DNA of 64,000 nt from Paragordius varius (lineage: Eukaryota > Animalia > Nematomorpha): assembly GCA_964247055.1 (NCBI GenBank), contig OZ176053.1, forward strand, positions 9,114,001 to 9,178,000, written 5' to 3'. Both the position numbers and the translations under genes were made by a program. This document shows positions 3,088 to 39,200 of the stretch, in pieces. The notes beneath the pieces were generated by a model that was not told the DNA's origin, did no database searches, and was given only the letters and a program-made list of their open reading frames with translations. Within the stretch, counting starts at the first letter, position 1. Each line of letters begins with the position of its first letter.

Positions 3088-3149
3088 CGAAATTTTAATA
3101 AATTGACATTATTTGTAATTCGACGATATATTTTTAATTCAACGATATA

Positions 3150-4927: not shown

Positions 4928-6451
4928 CACTTCGATTCAAATTGGGTAGCTAAATGCCCCAGATAATATTAAAGTTGATATTTTTAAAAAACTGAAAGAA
5001 ACGGTTCAAATTTAAATTTATGCTACTATCCTAATAAAAACTATATAAATAGGTCAAAATATCTAAAATTTAGTTTTTTAAAAAATCCACCTGAAACTAT
5101 TTAGGCGCCATTTTTATTATGCAATGTTTATTTGATTTTAAGGTAAAATCAATTTTACTCTTTTATTAAAATTACAATTAACCTTAATATATAGAGAAAA
5201 ATGGTATATTTTATAAATTTAGCTAACGCACACATGCCATGTAGGCTAAACTTTTATATTTGTGTTTTAACTCTGATTAAGTTATTAAGTATTTTCGAAT
5301 GAATTTTTTTACATTTCCGTTCATTAATGTTATATAATGCATTTGCCAATTTATTCCATATTTTCAAATTTAATTTTAAACAAGCCTGGGAATATACAAC
5401 TACCCCAATTTGAATCAAATGGCTGAATAAATGTGTTGCATCCAAATTTAAAAAGCTCTCAGAATGCATTTTATCATCAAGTGATTGTCATCTGTGTCAA
5501 AGTGTTTTAGAGCTGTCCCACTAAATGTAAAAAATATGAGTTTTTTTGTAGTACACGAGAAAGATGTTTGGTGATTGAATTTTAACTAAAATAAGTTTCG
5601 TAGTGGTTTATTCAAGATTGCTGGGATATAAAACTATCCCCAAACGTCATCGCGAAACACGTTGTATTTTCCCGACTAAATATAAGCCCTCGTTTTCTTT
5701 GATCTGCGAGCCTTAAATAAAAAGCTTCTTAAGGCCAATTTGTTTGTCAAATCCTGCAAACAATAAGTCAACAAAAGTTTAAAAAATGGAGGCTTTAAAA
5801 ATAATTTTTAAATTATGCATAAAATACTTATATCACAAATATATACCAATTTAATTACAAAAGTGCTTTATCTTTTTTAACACTTGGATACAACACATTC
5901 CTTTTAGTCCTTCGATTCAAATTGAGGTAGTTAATTACCCCAGGCCTGTTTAAAATTATCTTTAAAAAATATGGAAGAAATCGAAACCATGTCAAAATTT
6001 TGCACTTATATAACATAAATAAACCGATATTTATAAAAACATTTATTTAAAAATACTTGATATTACGTATTTTAAGATAAAACCAAAAGGTAAAAATTTA
6101 GTCAACGCGGCATGTGAGCTAAAATTGACAAATAATATGAAATATACCGCTCTTTCTATTTCTATCAATGTTTGATGCAATTTAAATTAAAAATTAGCTT
6201 TAATTTTACCCTTAAAATTAAATGAAGACGATATTTCACAAAAATTTTGTAAAATAAAAATGGCGTCGAAATAGTTTGACATGGAACTTTTTTTAAAAAA
6301 CAAAACTTTATTTAGAAATTCTGGCATATTTATATATTTTTTATTAGGATAGAAGCATAAATTTAAATTGGGACCGTTTCATTCAGTAGTTTTTTAAAAA
6401 TCCTAATTTAAATTTAGTCTGGGGTATTTAGCCCCAATTTGAATCGAAGTG
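4928..6451. mobile_element. Two inverted copies (about 4928-5425 and 5908-6451) of a roughly 500-bp piggyBac-like MITE; outer ends flanked by TTAA
   Basis: TTAA|CACTTCGATTCAAATTGGG at 4924-4946 and CCCAATTTGAATCGAAGTG|TTAA at 6433-6455. Related termini at about 5385-5420 and 5910-5945. 4960-5260 is a diverged reverse complement of about 6100-6430. Confidence 0.65.
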
Positions 6452-6549
6452 TTAATTACAATATATTTTTTGATCTTCCTACAGTTTGTCATTTTTACTT
6501 TTCCCTATTTGTATTGTTTTGGAGTGCGGTTATTTCGAATTTGAATAAA

Positions 6550-15500: not shown

Positions 15501-18500
15501 GAAAAATATTCTAAAAATTTGGCAATATTAACTAAAAATCCACTATCCACAGTAAAAATAAAAATTGATTTAATTTATTTTCTTCATTAATCACAAAATG
15601 AAGTTAACTCTTTAATATAATGACCTTTTATAAATGGGATCTATCATGATATACCACCTTATTAATAGATAACATTTTTTACGTATTTTTATGGAGGCTA
15701 TAAAAATTATCATAATTTTGTTTATGCTAGATACCTCAATTTCCTATTTATACACGGGCAGGAGAGGTTCATGTGAAAAAGTTTTTGTTATCTGATAAAT
15801 TAATACTCAAAGAATCTCAGATCGAAATGATAAAATCATTTCATCATTATATGATCAAAAATGTTTTGCGTTTGGACAGTAAAAATATGATGTTTGAAGC
15901 AGAAAACAGTCCTTACAATTTTCTAATAACGATTGTGGGTTAGTTTATTTTTTATAACTCGCCATTTTTTTATTATCAATTTTTATTTGTAATTTAACCT
16001 TGTATAATATAATCTTTTATCATTTCCAGATCGTACTACCAAGAATGATAACCACCACATTGATTACAAATTTATGGAATACGTTTTTGCTAAGGAAAAA
16101 GAACCCTTACCTGATCTTAGTAATCCGTCGAGACCCAAGTTTTTGTTTCAACAAAACGAGTAAGAAATTATCATACGTTAATTCATATAGCATTTCCGAC
16201 AATAATCTTACCTCAAATTTTCTACAAACTTTATAAAAAATTTACTTGTACCTTCTCACAAACCATTATAATTATTTAATACCATATAAAATTATATTTA
16301 TTAATACTTTGTTAAATATCTTTTATATTGTAAGTAAAAAAGGTTAATTTTTAATCATTTTTATATAACGGGTTGTGATGCGGTTTTTCCTGCTATGCCA
16401 ATCATAATAAAGAAAGCTAACTATAATTATTTTGACTAATTTAGCTTTATAGATGCCGTAGTGTCCCCATTGTATCGTCAATCCGATCGACCCATGTATT
16501 ATTTTGTGGCTGAAATTATGAAGGACATGACACCCAAAAGCGTTTTCCCAAAAAATAGTGTTATGCGTATGATGGATCGTGGCACATTGGATGACAAAAA
16601 AATTGTATAAATTATGATGGTGTATATATCATTAAGTGTGGTGCTATTTGTTGTTTTTTTTTCAACCTTTACTACACTATATTTAAAATACATACCTAAC
16701 ATTGTCATGCAGTATATACAACAACGAGATATATTGTTGGGCATAAAGTTATATTTTTCGCCTTTTCTTGTCATTAAACAGTAATGATACTCTTTTCCAT
16801 ATATGCTATATGCTATCTGGTAATATTTAATGGATTGATAGATAGATTGCTGTTGTCAAGGGGTCCCTTGGCATCCCGTCGTAACGGGGTTTAGGTGTTT
16901 GATCATTGCATTGAAGGATTTTTATTTAACCTGTAGGTTTGGGTAATATTTTTGTCCCATGTTTTTGCTGGACGACCAACTCTGTTGTTTGTTTGGCTTT
17001 AATGAAAAGCAGAATTTATTTTTGCTAATACTGTAATTGACACTTGATTTATTATCTCATTGTATAAGAGTACATCCTTATTTAATTTTTTGCTATCATA
17101 CATTTTTTAATTAAACGATATCTAATGCTATAAGAAGGGAAGCAAAACATAAAAATATTACTAAATAAAAAAGGATATAAAAATATACCAAACGATATAA
17201 TATATACTCAAAATCTTTTAAGGCAATCACTCGTTTTTAATAAAAATTTCAAATACTAATAATAGGAAATCGCTGAGAACGGTGATGCAGAAAATGAATC
17301 GGGCCAACTCACGGAATCAAATGAGACAACATTTCTCAATTACTATTTTAATCGTTATGGCATTCAACTTACAAACGATACACAAAATCTACTAGATGTA
17401 GACCATACAGTTGGCAGACTGAATTTGTTAGCACCAAGATTCATGACCAAGTATTAGAGAGACCTTTTCTTAGCATTCCCATTTTTCTGGACCGGTTTTT
17501 GACCTGTTAAATAATAATTTATGATTAGAGAATATATTAATATCACAATCGGCAACATATGTTGGAACTAAACAAAAAATTCATTTTATAGTTTTTACAT
17601 TAAAGTGGAATATTGCGTTAAATGAAGGCGTGAGGATATGGTAGGTAGGGCGCAGGACTACACTACCTGCCAGAGTTCAAATCCCGAAACTACGCAATTT
17701 TATCATCATCATTGTCCGCCCTGGGTAGGCGTGTGCTAAAGCCTTCATATGTCCGGATAAAATTTAGTCCTTACCCCTTAATATAAAAAAGGAAAAAAGA
17801 GACTCTAAACTATATTTTTTTAATTATGTTATCAACGTCTGTTAAAAAGTCGGTTATCTGGTCATGAATGCATCCCTCACCGGTCACCACAAATTTCCAT
17901 AATTTTTGTATTTAATAAAGAATTCTTAAATATAATAAAAAAATAAACTTATCAAGGATTGGCGGATTTTCATGGGACCTCTTATAGCTAAGAGATTTTT
18001 TATAATGCTAAATATATGTATACATCTAAAAAATAATTATATAATATTTTGGCATTACAAGTTGGTATTATCTTCAAATAAATGATGAGAATTCGATAAG
18101 GAATTATAGATACACTTATGTGTGGCAAATTGATCAAGACTATATATCCATTGTTATCAATATTATATCATATTGATAGAAATTACGAACACCAAATATG
18201 AACATCTTATTTTACTTAATTCGCATCAATTCATATATTGAAAAAGGGATACCTATACATGTATTGCCGGAATATTATAAAATGATTTTTTGCGATTGTA
18301 CCTATTTATACATTATTACATTAGTCGAAAATTTCTTATTTCTTCATGATTAAATGTTTGATAGGCAAGGTACCTTTTTGCCCGCATCCTCGGACAAAAC
18401 TAAACGATCGAAGCGAGATGATATAAACCAAAAACAAATTTTGGTGCCTGAATTGTGTAGAATCCATCCGTTTCCTACACCTTTGTGGCACAAAACTGTA

Positions 18501-21500
18501 TGCATTCCTGCTATTGTTCATCGTATAAATTATCTGCTGATATGCGATGAAATTCGTCAAAAATTGGCAAATAATGCCCTTCTGGGTAAACTAATACGAT
18601 ATTGACCACTTGATTATATATTACAAAACGCAGCTGTTTTTGGTTTCGGTTCTATTTTTAGTGAAAAATATTTTATTTTTATATCTAAGTAAGTAGTCAA
18701 AAATAACTTACTATCGGGAAAATATGCCATACTATTTTTTTAAGAAAAACTAACTAATTTATTTGTGCCTAAATTAAAATACAATATCTCTCATATAAAT
18801 TATTTTACTTCAACCATAAATTAAACGCAAATCTTTTTAAAAACATTTAAAAAATTAAATACAACTCCTGTAATAAACGTAAACCATTTAATACTCTATC
18901 ATGATACATTATCTGATCAATGATTTATATATAGCATATAGTTAGTATATAAATTTTAACAAATTTAAAATACGGTATATCTTGGCCAATTTTACCCGCC
19001 AATGATCCATTAAAAATTTAAAAAATGTGAATTTTACATCAAAAATCCGTTAAAATATAACAAGAATAATTTATATATTTCATATATTTGTCATTATGAG
19101 ATAGTTAATTCTTTTTCTGTTATATAATTAATTTTACCCCCTTTTGCACCATGTCATAAAGGAGCGTTAGAATTTCATACTTTATTTTAAAAACATAACT
19201 TATGTGTCATTATAGGCCCGGCCGATTTAGATGAAGTTCGTGGTGACGAATTTCCCAAACTGGATTTTGGGTGGAAACGTTTGTGCGAAATATATCTTGC
19301 TGGCGAAATTACCCACAATGAGGAAATAAATGAGTTTAATGATGGTGAAGAAAATAATCAAGATGTTAAAAATGAAAATTTGGACTCTGAAGAAAGTATG
19401 TTACATTATAAGAAGTTGAATGTTACAATTATATCTGTTTCTTTTATGAATATTCATTATAAGCAGTTTAAAATCGTAAATAAATGTCTTTTTTATATAT
19501 TCAACTTTATTAGATGATGCTAAAGTATCAACCGATTTATTGGATCATATGGTAAGAGAAATAACATCGGTAAATGATTTGGACCAAAATGAAACCACAT
19601 ATGAGTATGCTAATGGAGATACAGTAAATCAGATTAAACAAGAAAAAATGGATATCAATAATGATGACGTACCCCTGCTTCATAAAACAAATAGCATGCA
19701 ACAGTTTGAGGCATATCCCACACAAATTGCTGTACATATTTGTTTATCCCATAACTTTTATTAAAAAAATTCATCAAATCTTCTTACCTTTTTATTTATT
19801 TTTCATTTTCGTTTCGAATTTCATACTTATACTATATTTATTATTAGTTTTTAATTTTGCTCATTATATATGCTTTATATAAATTTTATTTTTTGTCAGG
19901 AAAAAGCAGCACCCAAAGTTGTTCATGTTAAGCCTTATCAACCCTTTAATGATGAAAATGCATCTCAAATTGATATTGTCCAAGGTACTTTTTAATTATT
20001 TTACATATTTTATACCCATTCACTACCCCTATCTTTTACATGTATAAAATTTTTACTTATATAATAGAGCCCAAGCCAGATCCTGAAAAACTTGGGAACA
20101 AATTAGTAAATATTAACTTTCTTTACCCAACAAAAGCTATATATTACTATTTTTTTATTTAGGCTTCTATGTAATTATATTTTTATTATCAGGATGATGG
20201 AATCGTTAGAAAAAATGTCAATGACAATACTTTTAATAACGATCGATTAAGTGATGATCCAGTAATAGTTTGCATAAGTCCTTTACATTATAAAATTGTT
20301 TGCAATAAGGAAAATACCGGTTATAATAAAAAAGTCAATAGCTTTTGCAATATTAAAAATGATTTTGCAATAAAACAAGAGGCAAAAAACGAAGATTTTG
20401 AACAAAGTATTGTGAATAAATATGATCAGCATAATTTAAATGACTTAGAGGGTACGACAAATGATACTAGTTTAGATATTTCGTCTTATTTTAATGCACT
20501 CATGGATACTGATGAAAATAATAATGACTCTTGTTTTAAACAAAATAAACCAACAATTAATATATCTACTACACCAACGTCTTATGAGAGAAAGAAAGGA
20601 GAATGTATTCGTGATATAACTAACATGGTTTCCAATGATGGTAAGATTTCCTCCAATGATTTGTCAGATTCTTTTACTGTCAAATTACCAGAAAAGGATA
20701 TGAGTACTATTCATAACTATAAGATAAACGGAGATGCGCACGTAAAGCAATCCACACCTTACACCAAACATGCAAACAAGTCTTATCGACAATACTTGAC
20801 CGAAAAGGGTAATCGAGTAACCAATCATTTCAAAAGAGTTGGAAAAAGTTTTGATAATACACCACGGAAACGATTTTTAGGTTCATATATGGATTTAGAT
20901 TCGTATCTGTCATCATCTAAACCTTCATCCCTTTTGAGAAAAAAATATTTACAAAATCATCATCATTCTAATCGAAATGCCTTGCATAAAACAACGGCTA
21001 TTAAGAACGATTATAGTGATGGAAGGCGCCGTAATACGCATTCACCAAAGAGAAGTTTGCTTGGCCAGAGACCCTATTTTCCTGATAAATAAATCTTAAC
21101 TTTTCCTACATAAAAAATGTATTTCGAATTGATTTACTTTAATGTTTTATTATATACACCATACCGCAATAATACACATTTATGCAATTTTTTGGTAATA
21201 GCGTGTCCTCCGGCTTCATAAATGCTATCAATATTGTATTACCCCATTTCCAACATTTATTAAAACTTTAGAACGATATCACAAGTCTTCTCCTTTCTTC
21301 CTCTCATAACTCAATAGTATCGCCACTAGTTATAACCGTGAACTGAACACGTCCATACTCCATATATTATTTCGCTACACATTTTTTGTCATCCAAAATA
21401 AAATAATTCAATACTTTTACAAAAAAATTAAACCTTTTCCTTCTCTTAACAGTTCTATTAAACCGATAAATATGTTTTAGATTAAACAAAACTCCTTATC

Positions 21501-24500
21501 TGATACAACAAAAACATCAAAAACTAATGGTGATGTGAGTTATGATGAGTTAGAGAGGGGAAAAGCATTAAATAATAATCAATTACCCATTAAAAAAACT
21601 AATGCGTCTCGTACATTGATTGATTTTGATAAAATGACCACGTTCGATATTGATAGTTATTTGAAGTGGGAGGAAACGGATTACAAATATGTGAATGCTC
21701 AATTACAAACATCAGATGATGGTTATGTGCTCACTGATCAAATTGGTAAATATTTTTTTTATCAAATCACATATTTTTATTATATATTGTTTTACATTTC
21801 AATTCCAATATTCTACAAAAATTTTGTAAAAACGGTTTTATTATAAATTGTCATCAAACGGCCAGGAATTATTAGTTGCATAAAAATAAATTCAGTTATT
21901 AGTTTATTTTATAACAAAAATAATTTGTTAAAATATAATATGATGTAAATTAAGCCGTTTGAATTATAATATGTTAATCGAATGTTTAAAATTGTTAAAA
22001 GAGAGGTTCATGAGATAACTTATTGATACGATTAATATACGGATATTTAGTAGTTATGATTTTATATAGGGCAAAATTAGGCATACATCATATACCTATA
22101 GTTTTTTTTTAAACACTGTGAAACCATGTAGGACAATTTAACATAATATACTTTCTAAAAAATACATGAGGCAAGAAAGACCAAAAAATCCTAATTACCA
22201 ATTTATAAAGCCCATATAACCAATAATATGGCTGTTTATAGCACATTAAATATTTTGGATAATTTTTGCGGTGTACGTTGGAAGTCTTTATTATATCAAT
22301 CGATTCGATATGTAGAATTAAAAAGTTGACTTCCCATAAACCTCCGGTTAAATCACTGAAATTTGAAATTTTTAAAAAACCAAGATAAAGAATCACTAAA
22401 AACTCTGGTTTATGCAATGCATATTCAATTAAATTAAAATAGTTTTTTATTAATTAATATTTTGTAATAAATTTATTGTCAATATTCGGATATAAAAACT
22501 TTATAAAGGAGATAATTAAATGTTAAAAGTTTTTTGAGAATATAAAATGTATTTTATAATTATGTACAATTATTACCTTAAAAGTTAGGATGCAAATTAC
22601 CTCTAGGTTCTATAAAATATTATTTTAAAAGCGATACGTACGTATATTCTTTATTATGTAGATCACGCGTAGATACAAAATAATAGCTGATACCTATTCT
22701 ATTTTTATTGTGCGAAAAAATGCTATTTCTAATTTTGGCTATAAATAGTATTGTATTATTTAAACGCATATATCATTTCGATATATGTATTAAGGAGCTA
22801 TCGAAGCATAAGATTTACATATATAATATGTGCGGATCGTGTATAGAAATCAACATTATTGTTTTTAGTTATTTTTGAAAATTAGAACACAGCGTACAAA
22901 ATCACGGGCTGCAAAAAATATGATTAAATATCCGTTTGCACTTCAAGTTGGATCTTAAAATTTTTAAATTTTGATTAAATTATAATTTATGCATGTATTT
23001 TTTTATTTTATTATTTTTAACATAATTTTCTTTTATTATATATTTATTCATTTAAAAATTAAAATATTTATTTGAAAACCACTATTTTATTTCAAACTAA
23101 TTTTTATCCAATTTAAAAAATTTATTAACTTTATGTTTTTGATGAAAAATTGTATAATAACCCAGAAAACTTATATATTTTTTAATTGAAAGCTTATATA
23201 TATCCAAAATAATTTTTATTAATTAATAAGGATATACGGTTTCTTAATGATTAAAGGTTGATATCGATTTATAATTTATGTTATTATAGAAAATAGGTTA
23301 AAAACGATAAAAATAGATGAATAATTTATGATTTGATTGATAAAAGTTAAAAATAAAACAAAAAAATCAAAGGACCAACTTGAAGTGTACAAAGACACTC
23401 TTGAAGTGCAAATGGTATATATATATATATATTGATAGGAAATTTAGTGCTTTTTTGCGAGTAATTTGGAAAAGTAATTTACACTTGTGTTAAATGCTCC
23501 ATATCAAAAAATAGTAAAATTTGAGGAGGACATTTTGTTAAATAATATTTTTGGTGAAATGCTTCATTCCAAAATTCACTAAAATATATCATGAATTATA
23601 TATAAAAAGCAGAACAATAATTTTATTAAAATTTTTATTTTTAGATGCGGGCTTTAAAAGTTCCAAAGATTTTCTTTTGTCTAAAACGGGCAGGTTCTTT
23701 TAAATTAAACGGAAAAATACCGAGACAGTACGATAAAAATTATAAATATATGCTAAATTATCTTGACAAAAAATATATTTTTAGCAAAATTTTTTATTAA
23801 ACGTCATAACACTGTGCGCAAAAAAGGGGGGTAAAAAATAAACGAACATGAGTTTTATCTAGAATAATAAGAGATCCCTTGGAAAATGAGATCCCAAAAT
23901 TTAGGGGCAAAAAATCGCCCAAAAATGGAATTTTTTCATTTTTGACCAGAAGTAGCTTTTTGTCCATATTTTTAAAACTTATTGAGCTAAAACTTTTATA
24001 TATTATATAAAACCTATTATATCTTAAGAAAAATACATTAAATATTTTAAAGTATCAATTAATTTTTTAATTCTACAGAAATTCGTAAATTACATTGTCG
24101 AAATTGAAAAAATTATTTGTAAAAACTCCATTTATTGTTATTATTATTTAGGATTATGACTTGCATTAAACACAAAGAGTTGGTATGTTTAATAAAGACT
24201 ATGTAGCTTTTTAAGTCCCTCAAAAAATTTGTATTTTTTGGAATATTTTCGTTTTTTTATTTTATTTTCCTCATATCCTTCTTGTTTCATAACAACATAA
24301 AGGCGCAATTTTTAAATGCGAATACAGAAAAAACCAGCAAAACTCCAAAATTATGAAATTCCCATTACATTACTTTGGATAAATGTTTTATACACTATTT
24401 AATCCATAGATAATATTAATTAAAAACCTTTTGATATGCAGAAGGCATCGGAAATATAAATTTTGCTCATCAAATAGTTACCTGCTATACACTATATTTA

Positions 24501-27500
24501 TCTTATTAGGGAAAATTCTATCTGTAAAGAATAATATTAATGGCAGATTGAGTTTCACGTGTATTTTCTTCATATAATTTTAGTTACAAAATAGAATTAT
24601 TCTTGCACCAAAATTATTATGACATTTTTAAATAATCTACTTCCAGAAATCTATTGCTCAAATTCTATATTAAACATTAAATATCCCAAACATCGAACAA
24701 AGTCTAAAGATAAACCGCTTAGGATATGCAGGCCATATCCACCGGCATCCATGGGAACACCCCTTACAATACATGCTTAACTACACCGCTTCAACAAAAA
24801 TAATAGATACCGACCCTTTAAAGATTGGTCAAAAACGTTAAATGAAGATATGATGATTTGCAACTTAAACATTAATGATGCGCTCGATCGCACTTCTTGA
24901 AGAAAAAAAATACGACAAGCTTCAAATCTGAAGATATAACCCAACAACAACAGTTCAAATACATATAAGAATTTCCTTTTATTTATTAACAATGAATACA
25001 TTAGATTAGTCAGACATAAAATGATTCCAATAGTATTCACCAATCATGTGGATACTATTGGAACTATTATATTTTTTTCTATATGTTTTAGCGTTTGATG
25101 GAACCGTTCTCCACCCTGGTCTGTAGCCCTCCACCGGGGGAATTTATCCAGATGTTTATCCATAAGATCCAGTTTTATGGACATATTAGCACCTAAAAAT
25201 AAATATAACATTAAATGTTAAAGATAAGTTTTAAAAATCAAATATTTACCTAGGACTTTATAGGAGTCTACCACTTCGGCTCCTAGAGAGAGATAATTCA
25301 TAGATTTATAATTTCCTAAAAATTCTCTACTGAAAGTTCTAAAAGCATTAAATGCTCTTTTTTTCAGCAGGATTCATTAGGTTTTACAAGACCTCCGATT
25401 CAAATAGTCTTTCTATTTGAGGGCCTGTTAATTAACCTGCGGCCAATTTGGATGGATTGATTTTGAACATATTTAAATAAAAAATGTAGGCTGGTCCTCC
25501 CTTGTGCATATTAATTATATAAGTGCGGGCTAGCCCCAATTTAATATGTAAGGGAGGAATCATCATGTTATCCACATCAATCAATGGGATTCTGTCCAGG
25601 CTATAAGTACCTTGTGTATTTTAAATTAAAATATACCTATGACATCATCCGTTCTAGGTTGGTATAAATGGTTTGAATTATAATGGTTTGCCTTATCTCT
25701 GGATTTAAACAGGCAAAAAAGGCAGGCGTACGTAGGGTAACCGCCCTTCAAACCGCGGCATATGGATAAAACCTAAAAATTATTTAATGTCTCTTATAAT
25801 CAGCAATCAATGAGTAGTGATTGCGATTTTGACACTTTTCCAACATTTTTTATATAGATCATAGTTTTCTTTCTTCCCATATAGTTTAGCTTTATAGGCT
25901 AGGATAATGGGCGGTTATTTAGATTCCTTATTGAATAGTTCAATCCCTATCATCTGTATAGCTGATTGCCAATTTATCAATCAAAGCTAGCAGGACAATA
26001 CAATATGCTATATTGTTTTCACATTTATATACATCAAAATGGTTATTTCGTTGTCTGTATTGACTTTTTTTTCACATCAATATTCACTTTCATATTAATT
26101 ATTTTTTCTGTCAGTATTCCGGTTTGCCTAATACTTGGCAAAACTATGATCTATAGAAAAAATGTTGGAAAAGTGTCAAAATCGCAATCACTACTCATTG
26201 ATTGCTGATTATAAGAGACATTAAATAATTTTTAGGTTTTATCCATATGCCGCGGTTTGAAGGGCGGTTACCCTACGTACGCCTGCCTTTTTTGCCTGTT
26301 TAAATCCAGAGATAAGGCAAACCATTATAATTCAAACCATTTATACCAACCTAGAACGGATGATGTCATAGGTATATTTTAATTTAAAATACACAAGGTA
26401 CTTATAGCCTGGACAGAATCCCATTGATTGATGTGGATAACATGATGATTCCTCCCTTACATATTAAATTGGGGCTAGCCCGCACTTATATAATTAATAT
26501 GCACAAGGGAGGACCAGCCTACATTTTTTATTTAAATATGTTCAAAATCAATCCATCCAAATTGGCCGCAGGTTAATTAACAGGCCCTCAAATAGAAAGA
26601 CTATTTGAATCGGAGGTCTTGTAAAACCTAATGAATCCTGCTGAAAAAAAGAGCATTTAATGCTTTTAGAACTTTCAGTAGAGAATTTTTAGGAAATTAT
26701 AAATCTATGAATTATCTCTCTCTAGGAGCCGAAGTGGTAGACTCCTATAAAGTCCTAGGTAAATATTTGATTTTTAAAACTTATCTTTAACATTTAATGT
26801 TATATTTATTTTTAGGTGCTAATATGTCCATAAAACTGGATCTTATGGATAAACATCTGGATAAATTCCCCCGGTGGAGGGCTACAGACCAGGGTGGAGA
26901 ACGGTTCCATCAAACGCTAAAACATATAGAAAAAAATATAATAGTTCCAATAGTATCCACATGATTGGTGAATACTATTGGAATCATTTTATGTCTGACT
27001 AATCTAATGTATTCATTGTTAATAAATAAAAGGAAATTCTTATATGTATTTGAACTGTTGTTGTTGGGTTATATCTTCAGATTTGAAGCTTGTCGTATTT
27101 TTTTTCTTCAAGAAGTGCGATCGAGCGCATCATTAATGTTTAAGTTGCAAATCATCATATCTTCATTTAACGTTTTTGACCAATCTTTAAAGGGTCGGTA
27201 TCTATTATTTTTGTTGAAGCGGTGTAGTTAAGCATGTATTGTAAGGGGTGTTCCCATGGATGCCGGTGGATATGGCCTGCATATCCTAAGCGGTTTATCT
27301 TTAGACTTTGTTCGATGTTTGGGATATTTAATGTTTAATATAGAATTTGAGCAATAGATTTCTGGAAGTAGATTATTTAAAAATGTCATAATAATTTTGG
27401 TGCAAGAATAATTCTATTTTGTAACTAAAATTATATGAAGAAAATACACGTGAAACTCAATCTGCCATTAATATTATTCTTTACAGATAGAATTTTCCCT

Positions 27501-30500
27501 AATAAGATAAATATAGTGTATAGCAGGTAACTATTTGATGAGCAAAATTTATATTTCCGATGCCTTCTGCATATCAAAAGGTTTTTAATTAATATTATCT
27601 ATGGATTAAATAGTGTATAAAACATTTATCCAAAGTAATGTAATGGGAATTTCATAATTTTGGAGTTTTGCTGGTTTTTTCTGTATTCGCATTTAAAAAT
27701 TGCGCCTTTATGTTGTTATGAAACAAGAAGGATATGAGGAAAATAAAATAAAAAAACGAAAATATTCCAAAAAATACAAATTTTTTGAGGGACTTAAAAA
27801 GCTACATAGTCTTTATTAAACATACCAACTCTTTGTGTTTAATGCAAGTCATAATCCTAAATAATAATAACAATAAATGGAGTTTTTACAAATAATTTTT
27901 TCAATTTCGACAATGTAATTTACGAATTTCTGTGGAATTAAAAAATTAATTGATACTTTAAAATAATATTATGTATTTTTCTTAAGATATATTAGGTTTT
28001 ATATAATATATAAAAGTTTTATCGTGTTTGCTCCATAAGTTTTAAAAATATGGACAAAAATCTACTTCTAGTCAAAAATGAAAAAATGGAAGATTTCCAT
28101 TTTGGGGCGCTTTTTGCCCCTAAATTTTGAGAGTCTCATTTTTCAAGGGATTTCTTTTTCTAGATAAATCTCATGTTCGTGTATTTTTTTGTGCGCACTC
28201 TGTTAGTAACGGTATAAAAACGATTTAAGATATATTAACTTTTCTATAACCTCGGAATTTTTGATTTAAATTCTTCAAAAATATTATATAAATTATGTTT
28301 ATTTAAAAAAATCGCCTAAATTAGAAAGCAAAAAACCTTTAAATTAAAATTCTGGAGTAGTAGAAATGTTTACTATTATCGAATTGTATAGAAAGGGTGA
28401 TTTATAATATCTTAAGGCTTTTTATATACCTTTTCCATTATACCTTAAATAAGTACGTTTCATATAAAAATTTTTAAAAATTAATGTTTTAAAGAGTGCA
28501 TTTTTCCAAAAATATTTTTTTTATGTTTGAGCACATAATTAAAATTTTTATCCCGCTATCTGTGCATTTTTGTGTTTATTTCAAGAGAAATGCCGAACGA
28601 AAAATGGCACTTTCGGAATCCACATCTAATTATTAAAAATTTTTAATAATATTTATTGTTCTTCTTATATATAATTGATATATTTTGGAGATTTTTTTGG
28701 AATGAAACATTTTCACCACAAAAAAATATTTAACAAAATGTGCCCCAAATTTTGCACTCTTATATAGAGCACTTACAAAAGTGTAAAATACTTTTTTAAA
28801 TCATTAAGGGCCCAAACCAAAAGCATCATGATAATCCTGATACATTTTCTTATCAGATGTATATTTTTCATCAGAATTGGACACTGTTATTGTACGATAA
28901 AATCTCGGCTTTTTTGTATACGACTGGAGTAGTTAATGCGCCAAACGGGATATATGGAAGAACAAAATTTCCATATTAAATATCTTGCACTAATTAAATA
29001 AAAATTCATATATATTTTATGTATCGTCAGGGCAATTCAATATATTTAATTATAAGGATATCAACATTTGTTTATTGTACTAATATTTGATCAAAGCAGA
29101 GTTATTGACATTATGTTGTTGTTTTATCATATATCGAAGTCTATTTGTTGCAAAAGTATAAATTCAGCTTGTACAGTTTGGTTTGGTCGGTTACATTGTT
29201 TCTTGGTTCCTTTAGTCAAATTATCAATCCAACGCGTTCAGCACCTAATATTTTAGAACCTTCAACTTTTTCGACATGAGTTAATATTTAAACTTTTTGA
29301 ATTTAGTGACATGGCTGAAGTAAGGGAGCTTCATTTAAAGGCATGGATATGTCAGATTTGATTTTATCATGAATTATAGTGTTTTTTTATTTTCAATCGA
29401 TCTGAAGCAATTTTCTCTAAAACCACATTTTTGGAGCATTTATATATTGTGTGATTATTATTATTGTATATCAAAAAATATACAATCTTTTTAATTGAGA
29501 TGCGTACCTGAGGTTATAAAAAGCTTTCCATCGATTGAAGGCTTTGATTCTTACATTTAAGAATTAGATCAAAGTACTTGGTAAGTCGGCAACAAGGTTT
29601 TTTATAAGGCTCTTTTTTAATATGTTACCTAAGAAAGCCAGTTTATTAGATATTTTGCATATGGATATGCTTGGTTTGATATTTATCAGGTCGGTAGACC
29701 GTTTATCCATTTAATTTCCGATAAAACGTTTTAAGGCATCCAACTTTCAAAACCGTAAGATATGTGAGAAGAACATACATTTTAATATTAGCAATTTCGT
29801 AACAATTGATGATCAATTGTTTTTGAATAATGTTTTGTTGAAAACACGCTATTTTACCAAGTCGCTGTTTGATATCGTACAAGGAATCCCTCTTATTCGT
29901 TATTATTACTATTATCTCTATTTTTGGACCATTTCGAAGTTAGATATGAGATTTTTAGCTGATTTATTTGGATCCTAGTCTTGCTTTTCTTAAGATTTAT
30001 TTATACTCCACTCTCATGTGTTACACTGTGCAAAAAAGAAGGTCAATTTTTTGACAAAAACATGTTATTTCATTAGAGAATCCAACGGGAACAGACATTT
30101 TTGCACATAGCAGGGGTCGACTGCCTAGGGCTCGCAAGCCAAACTTGTCTCGCCAAAGCATTTAGAAAAATTAAAATATTTCTTATTTTTAGGTTTTTGT
30201 TTAAAAAAGAGTGCATTGCTTAATCATAGTCACATTATTATTATTATTATGCACCATGTAATGTTAATAATAAATGTTTTCCATTTTATTAATACTATTA
30301 TATTGAGGTGTGTTATTTTAATTAAGTTTTCAAGCGTAGGGCTCGCCTAAAATTTTCTATTTTGAAAACGGCTCACCTCCGAGAAAGGTTGCCGACCCCT
30401 GCACTATATTTCATTTATTTATTATCTTAATATGTATAGGCCGATCTTAACTTTTAAATATTTTGTAATGTAAATTTTAATTAGCTTCCAAGAATCTTTT

Positions 30501-33500
30501 TAAAACATTTTCATTAACTAAATATTCCAATTGGTTTTAATAAAGAATTGTTTTGGATTTATAACATTTTTACGACATTTTTAATCCATATTTTCTATCC
30601 AAACTTATGGGAGAAATAGTACATCAAATTCTTAAATACTTTATGATGAATAATTAAATTACAGATAATGTATACAAGAACATTGAGTTTTTCCATCCTA
30701 AATCACACGTTCCCTTTACTCCATTAAATCACCCACTTTGCTCATTGGACGAAAATGGGGACCTTATTATGGATAATCCATGTATGTATGCTAATATAAA
30801 AAAATATTTTACAACCTTTTTAATATTAAATAAACACCTTTATGTATTATAGTTTCACCTCCACAAATCGATCAAGAACTGAGTAATGATTCCACATCAT
30901 CAAACGTAATGCAAAAAGATAAAAATTTCATTGCAAACAATGAACCAAACACCAATTATCGTACTATACTTGAAGATGATGGAGATTATATGACTCCCGA
31001 AGAGGAAAAGGTTAATTAAATAGTGGACATTGCCATATTTTAAAATTGCTAACATTCAACCCCAATCTCTATTGTTCACAAAAAACGGTTTTGTAAACAT
31101 TTTTTTTATTATGTATTGATTGAAATCAGCTTTAAATAAAAAAGTAATTAGACCAAACTGATAATTTTTTTCTGAACGAAACACAAAAAAAAATAATATC
31201 ACAAAGTATTTTTTTATTTTATTATTTTCTAGGGAATATTGAATGTATCGGAACCAATAAGCACTTTACAAGAGGCCGAATATGAGGATGGTTATTTATC
31301 CGATGAATGTTACTACAGTCCTTCCACATCGCCGCCCCCTGAAATTGCCGAAATAATCAAAGATTTGGAACAAGATTATGCGCCATCCTCGACAATCATT
31401 GATGAAAAAACTGGTATAATAACTATTTTAATCTAGATATATAATCGTTTGATAAGTCATTTAATTTTGTGTATATGATTATATGTTTTTGCAAATATAC
31501 CTCTATTGCTGGATGTGTTTGTTAGGACGCAAAACATATACCACAAAAAATAAGAAAAAATTTGCCCCATTTAAATGTCATTGTATACCATGATTATTTG
31601 TCTCCCCGAAAATTTTTTAAAACTATGACGTTCATATTGATTTTTACATCAGCAATAACTCCAAATTTAACAGTTCTAACAACTAATCTTTCACTTATTA
31701 TTTATTGTATTTGATTTATAGAACCTGAAGCAATCGATATTAATGTTTCATTCATGCCAGCCTTTATTAGCGAAATTAAGTCATATAAAGTTCAACACAA
31801 GACACTCGATTCCATATTTATAGACAAGGAAGAGAAAAATCAAAATATGGAAGAAGGTGAATTATCCAAAGGTACTATATGCATATATTTTTATATGTAA
31901 TTGAATTATTATACATTTAATCATGTGTGCTGCATTGTACATATACCTTTTTAGTACTTGATGTATTGGACCCCTTTAATTTTAACCAAGAGGATGAAGG
32001 TATTTATAGCTATTTTATTATTATTTATATATCTAAAATATTATATTAAGCTTTTATATAAATAAAAGTTTGGCATTTTCCATTTTTAATATAACAACAG
32101 TTCTATGAATTATTAGTTTTAAAATGCCTGTTTTCATTATATATTTATTTATTCTCCTCGTAAAACTCAATAAAACATTATAACCTAATCTAATTTATAT
32201 TTTTAGAGGCTTAATTTATATTTTTTCATTCAGAATATTTATATTAAACTTTAGAGCCTAAAAAATCCGAACCATTACCCTATTATGAACGTGATGTTCG
32301 GCATGCTGTTACAACCATAGATCCTAACACAAAACAAAGAGGTTAATTTGTAAATCAATAATTACATCTTTGCAATTATGTGATTGCATAAAATTTTAAT
32401 AACTGGTTAACTTTAGGGATTTTGACTATTTTGGACCAATTTATATTTCACAAATCGATTAAGATATGGCTAAATTAGAATTCAAAGCCTATTTTCGCCC
32501 ATATATATTATTTTTTTGATTAGTCATTATACCAAACTGTCCCGATATTGGCCTTTTACTCAGGGCTATTACTATGTCTACCTCAAACGATGCATTTGAT
32601 CTCGAACGCTTAGAGTTAATTGGCGATTCTTTCCTTAAAATGGCTGTCACAGTCTATCTTTTTTGTTCTGAACCGGACAGTCATGAAGGAAAACTTAGCT
32701 ATAAGCGTAGTAAACAAGTAAATATTTTTTGATAAATATATATTTGAAACAATTGTAATCGAGGCAGAAACATTTTGTATTATAATGGTTATGCATAAAA
32801 AAATTTGGCTTTATTCTGATCTTTAATTGTACACAATTTAGATAAAATTATTTTTTTTGTTGCATCTAAAATCAGTGTCACGCATAAAAATTCAACTATT
32901 TACAGGTTAGTAATTTTAAGCTGTATCATTTGGGAAAAATACGTGGATTTGGTGAAATTTTAGTATCAACCAAGTTTGAACCAGTCGATAATTGGCTTCC
33001 TCCTGGTTATGTATCCAAACATGCTGAACAAAAAGGTAATAATATAATTTGTATACATATTTATATGGTCGTATCCTGCACTAATGCCTTCTAAAGAAAC
33101 TTTTTGCGTTTTAGGATTTTTCAGTATATGTTAATTGAAGAGGCGTAAAAGTTTGGGTTTTTTTAACATTTTCAATCTAAAAAAGATTGCATGTACACCG
33201 TCACTATGATACAGCCGCTAATATGCCGTTTTTTTTACAGTGTTCGTATGGAAAAAGATAAGTAATCCGATAATTTCCGAAATTATTTAGAAAAAAATTG
33301 GATTAACCTAACTAATTTACCATAATCATAATTTTAAAATATTTGCGCATTGTCATTAGTTAGACATTAAATTAAATTACATAGTTTTTTTTTCGTGTTT
33401 TCCACCCACCTTTTAAAAAACTACTTTATGTAGCGTGTTACAAAAGTGAAATCTCCAAAATATATGACATGAAAACCGAGCATTATCTGTCGGATAAATG

Positions 33501-34325: not shown

Positions 34326-36030
34326 TAGCTCATTCAGAAACAACAATTTTTCATTCAAATGCACTTTTTACAATCTAAAAACGACACTTTTTTTTAATAA
34401 CCATTTTTTAATCAAATGGAGCATTATTTTATCCGTGTTTAGATGTAAAAATTTTGCGTTTTATTGAAAAAATGCTCTAGTCTGTAAATTGTTTTTTAAT
34501 GAAAAAATTTGTATTCTAAAATAAAATTCTAATATAAATGTATGTTTAGGCATTTACACACAGTTCCTATAGTTTACACCGGCTTACCGATTGTTATCAA
34601 AGGCTAGAATTTTTGGGAGATGCCCTATTGGATTATTTGATAACTAGACATTTGTACACACTTTCAGACCGATTCACTCCGGGTCAAATGACAGACCTGC
34701 GGTCTGCCCTCGTTAATAATATTATATTTGCCAGTTTAGCCGTAAAATTTGGATTCCATAAATATCTTTTATCATGCTCAACCAAATTATTTGCTACCAT
34801 TGATAAATTTGTCAAGGTTATTATGACTTTTTGCATTCTTGGTTATTATTCCACTAAAATTTGGACATTTTCCATTCAACCGTTTTTAAAAAAGCGATTT
34901 AGTTTGAAAATATTATATTTCAAACTCTTTTACATAGTTTTTTGGTTTTAATGCATCATATTTATATTATTTGCTTTTGTTAACTTTAAAAAAAGGTTCA
35001 AAGAGAAAAAACTTTAATTGGGAAGCGTCTGAAAAAAAGTGGGGATAACCTGGACGAAACAGATTTCTTTCCAATGCTCGATACATTTAACATGGGAGAT
35101 AACGTTTGTTTTTTATTAAATATATTTATATTTTTTTTAAAAAAATCCTAAATTTTTAAAATTCTAATTTTACAAAGTATATAAATTTTTTAGTTACTAA
35201 TTTGGGCAAATTATAATCGAGATGATGAATGGTACAGTAAGCGAATGAAAAATTTGGATCCAACAGTCAATGGAGGTTTAATTATTGTCCTTACATGTTT
35301 TATCAGCATTTGCAAAAATATGGATGATTTTTTATATACTTTATGATAAACTAAAATTCCGCAGCGCTAAAATTTGCATTGTTGAAATGTAATGTACAAA
35401 AAAACTAACCCTTCTTATAACTTATAGATTAATTACAATAATATATATTTAATCTCAATACAATAGTTAATGAAAATGGGACAATGATGTTTAAAGACAT
35501 TGAAGTACCCAAAGTTCTTGGTGATATTTTCGAATCCGTGGCAGGCGCTATATTTATGGATTCGGGCATGAGCCTTAAAACTCTTTGGCGAGTCTATTCT
35601 AGTCTCATGAGCGATGCTATCAGTATATTATTTTTTTATACCCTCCTAATTTTTGTATTCCATCTACGTGCATATTTTATTATATAAATACATTTTATAA
35701 TAGCTTATTACACAAAGCATATTCCAATGTCACCTATCCGAGAACTTTTGGAAAGTGAACCTGATCGTGTCCGTTTTATGTATTTGATAACTACTATATT
35801 TCATAATTTTTTTACAATTTTTATACTTTTTCACCTGCTTCAAAAAATATTACGTCTATAAATGTATTTTTTACAGGAAACCCGTCAAAATGAAAAGCCA
35901 TTACAAAGTTTGTGTTGAAATTTTGGGCAAGGGAAAATGGATAGGCCTTGGAAGTAACGCTAAAATTGCCAAATGTACGGCTGCCAAAACTGCTTTGGCC
36001 GGAATAAAAGGCAATATTAATATGAAATAA
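6550..36030 (+). CDS. Dcr-1: Dicer-1-like endoribonuclease, about 41 exons: 6550-6600, 6624-6786, 6810-6940, 7269-7665, 8698-8882, 11256-11499, 11770-11881, 12218-12392, 12924-13086, 13515-13669, 13766-13854, 14417-14581, 15022-15155, 15372-15551, 15731-15938, 16030-16159, 16445-16604, 17266-17450, 18365-18585, 19216-19395, 19514-~19731, 19900-19984, 20068-20105, 20193-~20741, 21481-21745, 30665-30781, 30853-31010, 31233-31413, 31722-31871, 31955-31999, 32255-32341, 32524-32717, 32906-33035, 33434-33631, 34105-34271, 34550-34816, 34996-35103, 35194-35275, 35467-35622, 35704-35779, 35877-36030
   Basis: Phase-compatible GT-AG junctions join all Dicer hallmarks in order: [138 protein letters not shown]. 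Linker exon boundaries are less certain. Confidence 0.97.
9039..10080. mobile_element. Tc1/mariner-type MITE with roughly 170-bp imperfect TIRs in Dicer intron 5
   Basis: TA|CAGTCATGTAGACTTTATTTTGTTAAA ... TTTAACAAAATAAAGTCTACATGACTG|TA. The interior (about 9390-9800) resembles the MITE at about 6020-6430. Confidence 0.8.
10609..10920 (+). mobile_element. Internally deleted Helitron copy
   Basis: A|TCTATATATTTATAAAAATGGAAAATGC 5' end; ATCCACATATGTGGAT palindrome and 3' hairpins present; terminal CTAG lost. Confidence 0.75.
16840..17100 (-). mobile_element. RTE-like LINE 3' remnant
   Basis: Minus strand reads [15 protein letters not shown] (RTE C-terminal GRP..W motif), followed by an (ATCT)n tail. 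Confidence 0.5.
17627..17780 (+). mobile_element. Probable tRNA-derived SINE
   Basis: A-box-like TGGTAGGTAGGG and B-box GTTCAAATCCC at tRNA-like spacing; local GC island; no complete cloverleaf. Confidence 0.4.
22932..23415. mobile_element. TA-flanked MITE with CC(A/G)TTTGCACTTCAAG termini (same terminus family as 56402-56772)
   Basis: CCGTTTGCACTTCAAGTTGG at left; CCAACTTGAAGTG and CTTGAAGTGCAAATGG|TA at right. Confidence 0.55.
24690..24925 (+). mobile_element. RTE LINE 3' remnant inside the left palindrome arm (mirror at 27083-27318, -)
   Basis: [13 protein letters not shown]...[14 protein letters not shown]...ALDRTS*RKKI matches the RTE RL.WAGH / RP..W / A.DR..WR pattern. Confidence 0.7.
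25960..26935 (+). pseudogene. Chapaev/CMC transposase pseudogene, catalytic half only (mirrored on - at 25073-25868)
   Basis: SIPV; LIADYK; [25 protein letters not shown]; [10 protein letters not shown]; GPQIERL; EFLGNYK; GANMSIKL...HLDKFP; DQGGERFHQ, all in the order I recall for this family. Stops and frameshifts present; introns at 26372-26397 and 26759-26815. Confidence 0.85.
29100..29880 (-). mobile_element. Degenerate RTE LINE remnant
   Basis: DIKQRLG, YGFESW, KVEG and WIDNL motifs on the minus strand in shifting frames. Confidence 0.55.
30111..30401. mobile_element. hAT (Charlie-like) MITE
   Basis: CAGGGGTCGAC ... GTTGCCGACCCCTG termini; no clean TSD. Confidence 0.6.
32524..36030 (+). 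other. Dicer RNase IIIa, RNase IIIb and C-terminal dsRBD exons
   Basis: Both catalytic signatures present (ERLELIGD / DKCIADCVE; QRLEFLGD / PKVLGDIFE); ds[13 protein letters not shown]...[10 protein letters not shown]; TAA at 36028-36030. Confidence 0.95.
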
Positions 36031-36162
36031 TCTACTTATTTTATATATAAAATTCGGTTTATCGCATTTATTTTTATGAACTTCCATTTTTAATCTTTTT
36101 TATCAAAACTAGTACATGTTTGATGCAACTGCAAATATTGTAATAAGTTTTATTATAATTAC

Positions 36163-36168
36163 AATAAA
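36163..36168 (+). terminator. Candidate poly(A) signal of full-length Dicer
   Basis: AATAAA about 130 nt after the stop and just before the Helitron at 36217; weak evidence in AT-rich DNA. Confidence 0.4.
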
Positions 36169-36216
36169 TAGATATATTTTTATCGATACTATTATTCAAA
36201 TAATCATACTCGGGAA

Positions 36217-39200
36217 TCAATATATAAAAATGGAAAATGCTGGCTTTGTGATTTGTTTCCGACAATCCGGTGGACCCATTCAAAACCAAATGTCGAAAAA
36301 AATAATCATTTATGAATGCCCCGACAATAGCTCCGCCCTTTTTTTTAATTAGGCTCCCAGTTCGGGTCCACCCCGTGTAATAAAAATTTGAAAACAAGTC
36401 CACAAAAATCGCGTCTTTGAGACAATTTTCCGTAAAACGTCTTGGACCATTCGATTTCATATAAAAATTTTTACAATTTTTTTGATTGCTAGTCGGCTCG
36501 CTTTTTAATTTAGGCCCTCTTTTTACCCCCTCGCCCCGTAAAATGCTATTATTTTCAACTAAGTCCACAAAAATAATTTTTTGAATCTATTTTTCGCATA
36601 GGTATGAGACCGTAAAAATTTAATGAAAATTCCAGGTATTCCCTGTTAAAAAATTTTAGTCGTGCCTTTCTTTTATATTAGCTGCTGGGTAAGGAAAAAC
36701 CCACTAAAAACTGCCTCGTCATATCGAAATAGCGTGCTTTTGGGGCTAGATTTGAGAACCCTGGCCATATGAGTTCGATAGCAGCTTAAGATATTACCCG
36801 TAACAAGGCAAAAATTTAGGTCGTGCGGCTTTTAAAATTAGCCCTTAATTAGGCCGATCACGCCCTGAAAAATGCGCCACTATAGAATAAATTTTTAGTT
36901 TTGAGGCAATTTTTCCAAAACCAATGATATGAAATCAATGATGATTCCAGGTATTCTCCGTAAAAAGGCAAAAATTTTAATCAACCGCTTTTTTATATCA
37001 GCCAAAGGGTAGAGATCTACCCGCCTAAAACTGCGCACCATATTGAAATTGTTTTTTTAGGAGTTAATTTTCAGAAAACATATCAGACCACATAAAAAGG
37101 AAAAAAATTAAGTGGAGTGGTTTTTTTAAATTAGCTGTTAGTTAGCCCTTTACGCCCTGAAAAATGTACTATCATTGAACTATTATTTAATTTTGAAGCC
37201 ATTCTTCCAAAAACTATTAAGAATATATGGAATGAATGAAGATTTCGGGTATTTCCCTATAAAAGCAAAATTTTTTATCGAGCGCTTATTTATATTGGTT
37301 TCTGGATATCGATACAGCGGGATTTTGGAGGCAAATTTTAAACTTATCAGGCCAAATGAGTTCAATAAGGGCTTAAAATATTACGTAAAAAATCAAAAAT
37401 TTAAATATAGCGGTTTAATCAAATTACCCCTTACTTAGCCCCTTGCCCTGAAAAATGCAGGACCATAGAATGCTTTTTGGTTTGAGGCAATCTTTCGAAA
37501 ATCCCATTAGAGCATATGGAATCAATCATGATTCCAGGTATTATCCGAATTAAGGCAAAATTTTAATCGAGCGTTTTTTTTGTTTTACCCCAGGTTCGAG
37601 GGCCACCCGCGTAAAACTGCGTCACCATATCGATACAGCATTTTGCGCATTTCAGAAAACCTATGAGACTATGTAAGTCTTAAAAATCAAATATTTTAGT
37701 ATAGGGAATTATTTCAATGATTCGCTAAGTAAAATTTTACGCTCTGAAAAAATGCGCTGCCATAGAATAATTTTGTTTTTAAGCAATATTTCATAGAACT
37801 TATAGGAACATATGGAATCCATGATAATTTCAGATATTCCCCATATAAAGGCAAAAATTTTGCCCACGCTTTTTTATACCTGCCAAAAACTACGCCTCTA
37901 TATGGAAATTGCTTTGTTTTGGAGCTAATTTACAGAAGATTTATGAAGCCATATAAAATCAAAATAAAAATTAAGGTCATATGTTTTTTTTATTAGTCGT
38001 TAATTTTGGGTCTTCATGGCAAATACGCCATCATATAACGATTATTAGTTATAAAATATTTTCTCGAATAACCCATGAGACGGTGGTATCAAAGATACCA
38101 AATATATGCCCTATCAAACTTAGCGCTTTTTCCATATAGGTCTTTGGGTAGGGATCTACTGGTATAAAACTGTGAAACCATACAAAAATGGCGTGGTTTT
38201 GGAGTAATTTAAAAAAACTTAAGAAGCCATACGAGTTCAAAAAAGGCTTTAAATAATACCCATAAAAAAGTGAAAATTATAAAATAGCGGTTTTTTCCAT
38301 TAGCCGTCAATTGGGTCTTCATGGCTAGTAAACAATGTATTAGATGAATGCACAGTTTTATAAATTTTATAAAGCACCGTGTTGATAATCCTATGAGATC
38401 ATAACTATTAAATAACACTAGACAACAAATTTTAACTTTTTTTAACTGCCATCCTTGTAAATTTAAAATTTATTTCATTAAAGTACATAATTAGTATATC
38501 TGAAAAGAAAATTGGTCTAGCATAGAAGAATTTCTTTATATTAGAGTTTATCGATTATTTTTGGCCCTGATTTTACATTAAACTCGAAATTTCGAAAATT
38601 TAAAGTTTTAGATATGAAGCCATGTATTTTATATCATTCGAAAGAGCGCAAAAAACTGAATCTTTTAAATGGTAGTAAGTCATTTAAATCAATCGGATGT
38701 AAAAGTTATTTGGATTAAAAGGGTCGAAATTTTTAATCCTTAAATAAGTCAAGAGTTTTCACAGACAAACTAATTTGAAAATCATATAAATTATTTTAAT
38801 ATAATTATTAGGTTTATATTAGTATTTAATTTAATAAAAATGTTTGAAAAAGCTTTTGGTTTGCTTTTTTAATAAAAATTATTATTATCATAAATATTTT
38901 ACCTAGTGGATACTAAAATGCATAGTTATAACTGTAAATTTATTACATAATGGCTATAAAAGATCAAAAATACCTTAAACTTTGTTTTTATCTTTAAAAT
39001 TTCGAAATTATCAGCCTTGTAAAGAAAATAAATTAATATTGATGAGAAGGTAATTTTTAAAAAAACAAAAAACTTAAAAATGGCTGTTTTGAGTGACATA
39101 AAAGCAATAAAAAATGTTTTAATCAAAAAAACTTTCTTGTGTTATCTTTTTTGGACATTCATCTCCATCTAAACAAAGTTTGAGCTATTTCCATCCATTA

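Follow-up and report, generated by a model that had tools for sequence, protein, structure and literature searches.

A probably dead, palindromic Chapaev-like transposon derivative in a putative Dicer intron of Paragordius varius

The Dicer gene of the nematomorph Paragordius varius harbors, in a putative intron, a 4.39-kb palindrome. It probably derives from a Chapaev-like (CMC) cut-and-paste transposon and is a dead, non-autonomous element of the foldback type; the duplex that it could form in RNA would be a passive result. Its placement in the Dicer intron is most likely incidental. The analysis covered a 64-kb stretch of contig OZ176053.1, termed the window, and all positions refer to it. 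An initial annotation had described the locus as a transposon hairpin of the Mu killer type; the features now recognized are collected in Table 1.

Table 1. Features of the palindromic element and of the surrounding putative intron, in window coordinates.
Feature	Coordinates	Strand	Basis or remark
Putative Dicer intron with the element, 8.9 kb	21746-30663	+	GT/AG and reading frame
Whole palindromic (foldback-type) element, probably Chapaev-like	23810-28202	.	Symmetry alignment, termini, hallmarks in PMC4079192
Left outer terminal region	23810-24042	.	Mirrors 27966-28202 at ~89%
Left arm	24043-25868	-	3' part of a longer transposon copy, with decayed transposase pieces
Transposase pieces, left arm	25772-25629, 25620-25435, 25373-25221, 25217-25047	-	
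Mirror copy of the LINE-like fragment	24610-24838	+	
Spacer (loop)	25869-26139	-	Asymmetric; carries on the left copy's transposase upstream
Right arm	26140-27965	+	Inverted copy of the left arm, with transposase pieces
Transposase pieces, right arm	26236-26379 (CxxC), 26388-26573 (PPLHIKLG), 26635-26787, 26791-26961 (GERFHQ)	+	
LINE-like ORF2 tail fragment	27170-27398	-	Antisense to transposase; Atlas lead only
Right outer terminal region	27966-28202	.	Terminus CTG-3' rather than GTG-3'

Recognition of the palindrome relies on an inverted-repeat search of the window, which returned two near-perfect arms of 1826 nt each, separated by 271 nt. Compared base by base, the arms show exactly two mismatches, one with T opposite G (24074/27934), equivalent to a U-G wobble in RNA, and one with A opposite G (25852/26156); the distance to the arm edge is 31 nt for the first and 17 nt for the second. 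All other inverted repeats of at least 150 nt in the window are only 70-80% complementary, so that chance pairing of the arms is excluded. The initial annotation had placed arms at 24046-25868 and 26140-27962 in exact register around a 271-bp loop and had named the same two mismatch sites; no others were found, and the arms proved 3 nt longer on each side. Weaker mirror symmetry continues outwards to 23810 and 28202 (~89% identity; the alignment has 195 identical columns, 25 mismatches, and 30 gapped columns), which accounts for the outer limits of 23810-28203 given earlier. Identity rises from ~80% at the tip to ~98% beside the arm and 100% inside the arms, and four indels separate the two outer regions of ~230 nt. 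With these regions included, each arm is ~2.06 kb long, and the pair accounts for 4.12 of the 4.39 kb; the element thus consists mostly of two long inverted arms, as in foldback elements.

The hallmarks of Chapaev transposons are invariable 5'-CAC...GTG-3' termini and a transposase with C(2)C, LH, and H(4)H motifs in addition to DDE; the target duplication spans 3-4 bp, and in Chapaev3 it is TWA between A and T (PMC4079192). The left end of the element reads A/TAA/CACTGTGCGCA, and the right end, read on the minus strand, C/TAA/CAGAGTGCGCA. The left terminus, CACTGTG, fits the 5'-CAC rule, and the right terminus, CAGAGTG in the minus-strand reading (...CACTCTG-3'), is one base off with CAG in place of CAC; the two termini differ at two of seven positions. 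The flanks, A/TAA on the left and TTA/G on the right, are both TWA and are reverse complements of each other, not a direct duplication, and the right neighbor is G rather than T. Since the flanks form no direct duplication and the right terminus ends in CTG, insertion as a single unit can only be presumed.

The arms contain the pieces of a decayed transposase. In a protein homology search, the pieces are colinear with one transposase protein family (30 matches, best E 8e-6), further alignments of the pieces reach E values of 2e-10, 7e-9, and 4e-10, and the transposase profile scores 59, 37, and 21 bits in the arms and 14 bits in the spacer. The element retains CLFC, PPLHIKLG, and GERFHQ, with the H(4)H motif decayed to KHLDKF; the motifs of the homologue P0030 are CYLC, PPLHIRLG, and HSHLDH. 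In-frame stops fall within conserved blocks, as in a block of 14 residues that aligns with KLKAGVLNGPQLRSL of P0030, and frameshifts also break the pieces, the stops and frame changes being identical in both arms. The N-terminal ~185 profile positions are absent from the element, in agreement with the N-terminal half previously reported as missing, and PPLHIKLG, GERFHQ, and the colinear family alignment are in keeping with the earlier reading of a Chapaev/CMC transposase part in the arms. The loop had also been read as continuing the transposase upstream. A continuation does exist, at 26071-25943 (profile positions 186-225, E 0.004), but it lies on the minus strand and belongs to the left copy. 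Apparent 'SIPV' and 'CID' matches that would make the spacer a continuation of the right plus-strand copy were rejected, with a BLASTP E value of 3.9 and the profile match on the minus strand.

Searches of other resources added little to the naming of the sequences in the arms. A Pfam search with nine element pieces and eight homologues gave nothing useful, and no curated profile names the transposase family; the Atlas was uninformative for a transposase piece, an exact-protein look-up of one arm ORF returned no record, and a homologous-protein search with a 62-aa transposase piece returned no candidate. The LINE-like fragment has an Atlas lead to endonuclease-reverse-transcriptase / DUF6451 clusters and no match in Pfam; the label RTE, which it had been given at the outset, goes further than this lead.

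No second DNA or protein copy of the element sequences is present elsewhere in the window, and the earlier statement that CMC and RTE families are both abundant in it was not upheld. Judged by depth, the sequences are multi-copy only genome-wide, the summed contig depth of arms and spacer being 2,000-20,000 versus about 350-900 in the unique flanks. A comparison with read contigs was made at 85% likeness for the half-stretch 20300-26160, with short DNA-type contigs built from 31-letter words. It revealed numerous related genomic copies, most of them 85-95% identical to the element, and was swamped by these paralogues (~6,000 short contigs per run). No contig in this comparison spans the palindrome, the structure of which rests on the assembly, and among the contigs listed neither the fold-back joints nor the 25852 variant appeared. 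A possible second inverted junction, joining 25159 to 26043, was observed in a paralogue.

The element is flanked by the Dicer_dimer and RNase IIIa exons of a plus-strand Dicer gene that appears intact. Upstream of it the plus strand encodes DEAD/ResIII, Helicase_C, and Dicer_dimer, and downstream two Ribonuclease_3 domains and Dicer_dsRBD. The 8.9-kb intron of the initial annotation is consistent with these borders (donor TTG/GTAAAT, acceptor TTACAG/AT, phase 1, frame continuous), and as a putative intron it is defined by GT/AG and frame; Dicer_dimer and RNase III domains on the same strand on either side place the element inside the transcription unit, as had been proposed. The putative intron is long and transposon-filled. 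The RNA fold is predicted to be a single long duplex with 2052 arm-to-arm pairs, a longest helix of 1809 bp, and an energy of -3447 kcal/mol, in line with the earlier suggestion of long dsRNA (here about 2050 predicted base pairs) in the Dicer pre-mRNA.

In structure, the element comprises a 5'-truncated minus-strand copy that begins near 26139 and reaches its 3' terminus at 23810. Opposite this copy, its 3' 2.06 kb is repeated in inverted orientation from 26140 to the terminus at 28202. This is the inverted partial-transposon architecture recognized at the outset, with the 3' part duplicated in inverted orientation and the N-terminal part of the transposase missing. The palindrome would either have formed in place or have arrived as one unit. 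Over the inner 1826 nt the two copies have been kept, or were recently made, virtually identical, and the outer ~230 nt have diverged. We infer that the arm identity most likely stems from arm-to-arm gene conversion; the rise in identity from ~80% at the tips to 100% inside, together with mismatches near the arm edges, fits conversion that fades towards the borders. Because arm-to-arm gene conversion yields the same result, near-identical arms need no selection. As a passive consequence, the Dicer pre-mRNA should be able to fold into a near-perfect duplex of ~2 kb, which would probably be discarded with the intron, and part of which may be diced or edited. A TIR-primed template switch, in which the outer 230 nt would represent the 5' and 3' TIRs of the parent, was given less weight; the tips are the least identical parts, the opposite of normal TIRs.

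Two other histories of the palindrome have to be considered. It is possible, although unlikely, that two family members, each 5'-truncated, inserted head-to-head at nearby TWA sites and that gene conversion later homogenized their interiors, with no stage as one mobile foldback unit and no single inverted-duplication event. A divergence of ~11% plus four indels, as in the outer 230 nt, is what family members typically show; the TAA and TTA flanks are both TWA sites with no direct duplication, and the differences between the two termini point the same way. However, such a history requires two truncated insertions face to face within 4.4 kb, and the junction at which a paralogue may also be inverted points to a mechanism that recurs or to a palindromic family that is mobile. 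An assembly artefact is quite improbable. In that case either the palindrome itself would be the product of a fold-back chimeric long read, or the arms would owe their near-identity to consensus building or polishing that homogenized two copies of greater divergence, so that true differences survived only close to the anchored edges. In favor of an artefact, no contig crosses the palindrome in the comparison, and neither of the two remaining mismatches is more than 31 nt from an arm edge, a pattern expected from homogenizing polishing. The depth of the T at 24074, moreover, is only about half the diploid value in samples X1 and X2, and X4 lacks this T. Against a chimera, the 271-nt spacer is asymmetric, native transposon sequence that a fold-back read would lack, the outer ends are distinct, diverged with indels, and enter different unique flanks, and the Dicer exons on either side run in the same direction. 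The junction of left flank and terminus is crossed by contigs from two samples, and the variant of right-copy type at 23988 is present in samples X1 and X2.

The remaining question is whether the hairpin has a function. Read-through from the Dicer promoter could yield a 2-kb dsRNA, the siRNAs from which would silence the Chapaev-like and LINE families in the manner of Mu killer, and/or processing of the hairpin could truncate the Dicer pre-mRNA and set Dicer dosage in the manner of MIR838. The element lies within the Dicer transcription unit, its predicted fold is one long duplex, the numerous related copies would provide targets, and plants offer a precedent of hairpins in Dicer introns with proposed feedback (PMC4429486). 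Such a role is nonetheless doubtful, as gene conversion would already account for the arm identity. Intronic duplexes, moreover, are nuclear and usually discarded or edited. The strongest form of the proposal, a retained working hairpin-RNA gene in which each pre-mRNA would give a 2-kb duplex diced to siRNAs against both families and cleavage would couple Dicer output to substrate load, is very improbable.

The probable foldback-type derivative shares features with several known systems. Like foldback or palindromic DNA transposons, it has two long inverted arms with a short spacer and a broken transposase in the arms, it is intronic, and its near-identical arms are consistent with concerted evolution. 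Unlike them, it is least similar at its tips (~80%) and identical in its interior, and with TAA and TTA flanks and a degenerate right terminus its mobility as a unit is presumptive. In maize Mu killer, part of MuDR is duplicated in inverted orientation and read through from a flanking promoter, and its hairpin transcript, siRNAs, and heritable silencing have been demonstrated. The Dicer element is likewise an inverted partial duplication of an autonomous-type transposon within reach of an external promoter, which would read through it, and has no functional transposase; in contrast with Mu killer, it duplicates the 3' part rather than the 5' end, is intronic, and is described here from DNA sequence. 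Long intramolecular duplexes from inverted repeats in Pol II transcripts also arise at the hpRNA endo-siRNA loci of Drosophila, which are dedicated transcripts with known targets, and in intronic inverted repeats, the dsRNA of which is edited by ADAR. The present locus resembles both in this respect and differs from the hpRNA loci as an intronic transposon palindrome recognized in genomic sequence. In plants, MIR838 lies in intron 14 of Arabidopsis DCL1 and miR1047 in intron 7 of Physcomitrella DCL1 (PMC4429486). As in these two cases, the Dicer gene itself carries an intronic hairpin, given the borders set by GT/AG and frame, and the enzyme could cut its own pre-mRNA. The plant hairpins are short stem-loops of miRNA type with detected small RNAs, whereas here a 2-kb transposon palindrome is found in an animal genome.

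If the element is no more than it seems, it provides a clean example of near-perfect arm identity within diverged tips. To our knowledge, precedents for a Dicer transcript as a substrate of Dicer exist only in plants, in the form of the DCL1 intron miRNAs. By its position, the locus would be a convenient natural test of whether RNAi in this animal draws at all on long intronic palindromes, and of whether Dicer's own transcript is a substrate.

The arms of the palindrome, located by a repeat search of the window at 24043-25868 and 26140-27965, are 1826 nt each and lie 271 nt apart. Aligned base by base and exactly in register (i + j = 52008), the arms depart from perfect complementarity at only two positions: 24074/27934, a T opposite G that would form a U-G wobble in RNA, and 25852/26156, an A opposite G. 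Such pairing is beyond chance, as all other inverted repeats of at least 150 nt across the 64-kb window are only 70-80% complementary. Beyond the arms, mirror symmetry runs on to 23810 and 28202 (195 columns identical, 25 mismatched, 30 with a gap), with identity rising from ~80% at the tips to ~98% beside the arms. The spacer is without symmetry, 100 of 136 mirrored positions differing, which is the random level. The arms, mismatches, and outer limits of the initial annotation were all recovered, and the palindrome, as assembled, is real in sequence. Elsewhere in the window, a small hairpin-shaped repeat (40426-40612/40636-40822) has 187-nt arms, 70% complementary, around a 23-nt spacer; a related inverted copy pair of 175 nt (40322-40496/58018-58192) is 80% complementary.

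The element lies between Dicer domains (table), and the RNase III catalytic motifs of the gene read intact. A putative intron donor, GT after 21745 (TTG/GTAAAT), and acceptor, AG ending at 30663 (TTACAG/AT), keep the reading frame continuous across the borders. Together with same-strand domains on both sides, these signals place the element in a putative intron of 8.9 kb that belongs to the Dicer transcription unit and would be transcribed with the gene. Between the PAZ-side exons and the large intron, a long Asn-, Ser-, and Lys-rich open stretch (20175-21092, +) has no Pfam match; presumably it is a Dicer linker exon particular to this species. An ORF-like fragment with a shared 12-residue motif, found at 10473-10694 and 36113-36349 (+) in or beside the gene, is probably another dispersed repeat family.

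Coordinates of Dicer domains and transposase pieces (P0012 and P0030 are library proteins homologous to the transposase pieces)
Feature	Position	Strand	Evidence
DEAD/ResIII	7269-7670	+	Pfam; upstream of element
Helicase_C	12886-13236	+	Pfam; upstream of element
Dicer_dimer	14392-14589	+	Pfam; upstream of element
Transposase piece in spacer	26071-25943	-	profile positions 186-225, E 0.004
Transposase piece	26236-26379	+	P0012 residues 305-337, E 4e-10
Transposase piece, PPLHIKLG	26388-26573	+	30 library matches, best E 8e-6
Transposase piece	26635-26787	+	P0030 residues 444-488, E 7e-9
Transposase piece, GERFHQ	26791-26961	+	P0030 residues 475-520, E 2e-10
Ribonuclease_3	32520-32729	+	Pfam; downstream of element
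Ribonuclease_3	34550-34948	+	Pfam; downstream of element
Dicer_dsRBD	35791-36027	+	Pfam; downstream of element

The transposase pieces of the right arm (+) and left arm (-) all match a single protein family and are colinear with it. A profile from eight homologues, run against every six-frame segment of the window, matched only these pieces and one in the spacer. Because the spacer piece is on the minus strand and colinear with the left arm, the left copy is the longer one and presumably the original; the loop does continue the transposase upstream, as had been proposed. The N-terminus is missing as claimed, over about the first 185 profile positions. Stops within conserved blocks and several frame changes, the same in both arms, mark the coding sequence as dead. 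Element pieces and homologues were searched without finding a Pfam model for the family; C(2)C and LH motifs occur in the remnant and homologues and H(4)H in the homologues, all three characteristic of Chapaev transposases (PMC4079192). The homologues P0012, P0026, P0030, and P0016 represent a transposase-like family widespread in animals (CxxC … PPLHIKLG … NFLGN … GERFHQ, zinc-finger N-terminus) with no Pfam match except a sub-threshold zf-AD in P0030 (23.7 bits, cut-off 28), and the long members looked up are nameless singleton clusters from Logan contigs. An antisense stretch at 27170-27398 resembles a LINE ORF2 protein tail, with an Atlas lead to endonuclease-reverse-transcriptase/DUF6451 clusters; on that lead the annotated fragment is LINE-like, and its RTE label is tentative.

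Termini of Chapaev elements read 5'-CAC...GTG-3', and in Chapaev3 the target duplication is TWA, set between A and T (PMC4079192). The left end of symmetry, A/TAA/CACTGTGCGCA, fits these hallmarks fully, beginning CACTGTG (reverse complement CACAGTG), while the right end, C/TAA/CAGAGTGCGCA in minus-strand reading, departs from them by one base. Both flanks, TAA and TTA, are TWA sites but do not form a direct repeat. The transposon nature of the element and its decay are evident.

Searches for sequencing runs with the locus yielded DNA-type contig sets, two samples being from one organism and others from the very close 'organism B', and no RNA run. Summed depth is ~350-900 in the unique flanks and 2,000-20,000 over arms and spacer, contributed by thousands of contigs, most of them 85-95% alike, indicating multi-copy families in the genome. 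The window holds no second copy of the arm or spacer sequences, contrary to the proposal that CMC and RTE families abound there. In three runs (X1, X2, and X4, compared with 20300-26160 at 85% likeness), a joint 25159->26043 at single-copy depth, with a 28-30-nt side, connects antisense transposase (25003-25159) to spacer sequence. As an inverted junction within the same family, at different breakpoints, it suggests another palindromic derivative elsewhere in the genome, and hints that such palindromes may form repeatedly. In the same intron, 22848-23435 is an extremely high-copy repeat (summed depth 1e5 to 1.4e6; unique sequence has ~400). Strand-switch and short-skip joints are numerous in it, and it resembles a small foldback/MITE-like or a satellite family present in very many copies.

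The element is probably an incidental palindromic transposon remnant. The identity gradient and the placement of the mismatches (one 31 nt, the other 17 nt from an arm edge) lead us to infer that gene conversion would have kept the arms alike. Homogenising polishing would fit both observations as well, and all contigs are too short to span an arm, so that the palindrome rests on the assembly. Contigs of both samples cross the junction of left flank and terminus; the left arm alone has T at 24074, which one sample shows at roughly half the diploid depth and which was not seen in the other, and position 23988 shows a variant characteristic of the right outer region. An assembly problem is considered quite unlikely. 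At 20300-22450, over Dicer exon and intron, second-sample contigs and one first-sample contig differ from the assembly by ~1.5% plus indels, implying allelic diversity far above the 0.1% arm divergence. The palindrome may have arisen by in-place inverted duplication, by two facing insertions, or by arrival as a mobile palindrome; two insertions are a rather improbable origin, one compatible with an incidental remnant.

A ViennaRNA fold of 23760-28260 (plus strand) gave one hairpin of 2052 arm-to-arm pairs, with a longest uninterrupted helix of 1809 bp and -3447 kcal/mol. That Dicer pre-mRNA with this intron could form a duplex of ~1.8-2 kb is correct as a prediction, and the duplex would presumably form in vivo. 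The Mu-killer-like role envisaged initially, a working hairpin or Dicer-feedback locus, is quite unlikely beside the incidental remnant favored here; with small-RNA data behind it, such a role would deserve notice. The idea of a hairpin in Dicer's own intron has plant precedents, namely MIR838 (DCL1 intron 14) and miR1047 (PpDCL1 intron 7), described in PMC4429486. The element shares its architecture with foldback or palindromic transposons and with Mu killer, and adds an example of that known design.
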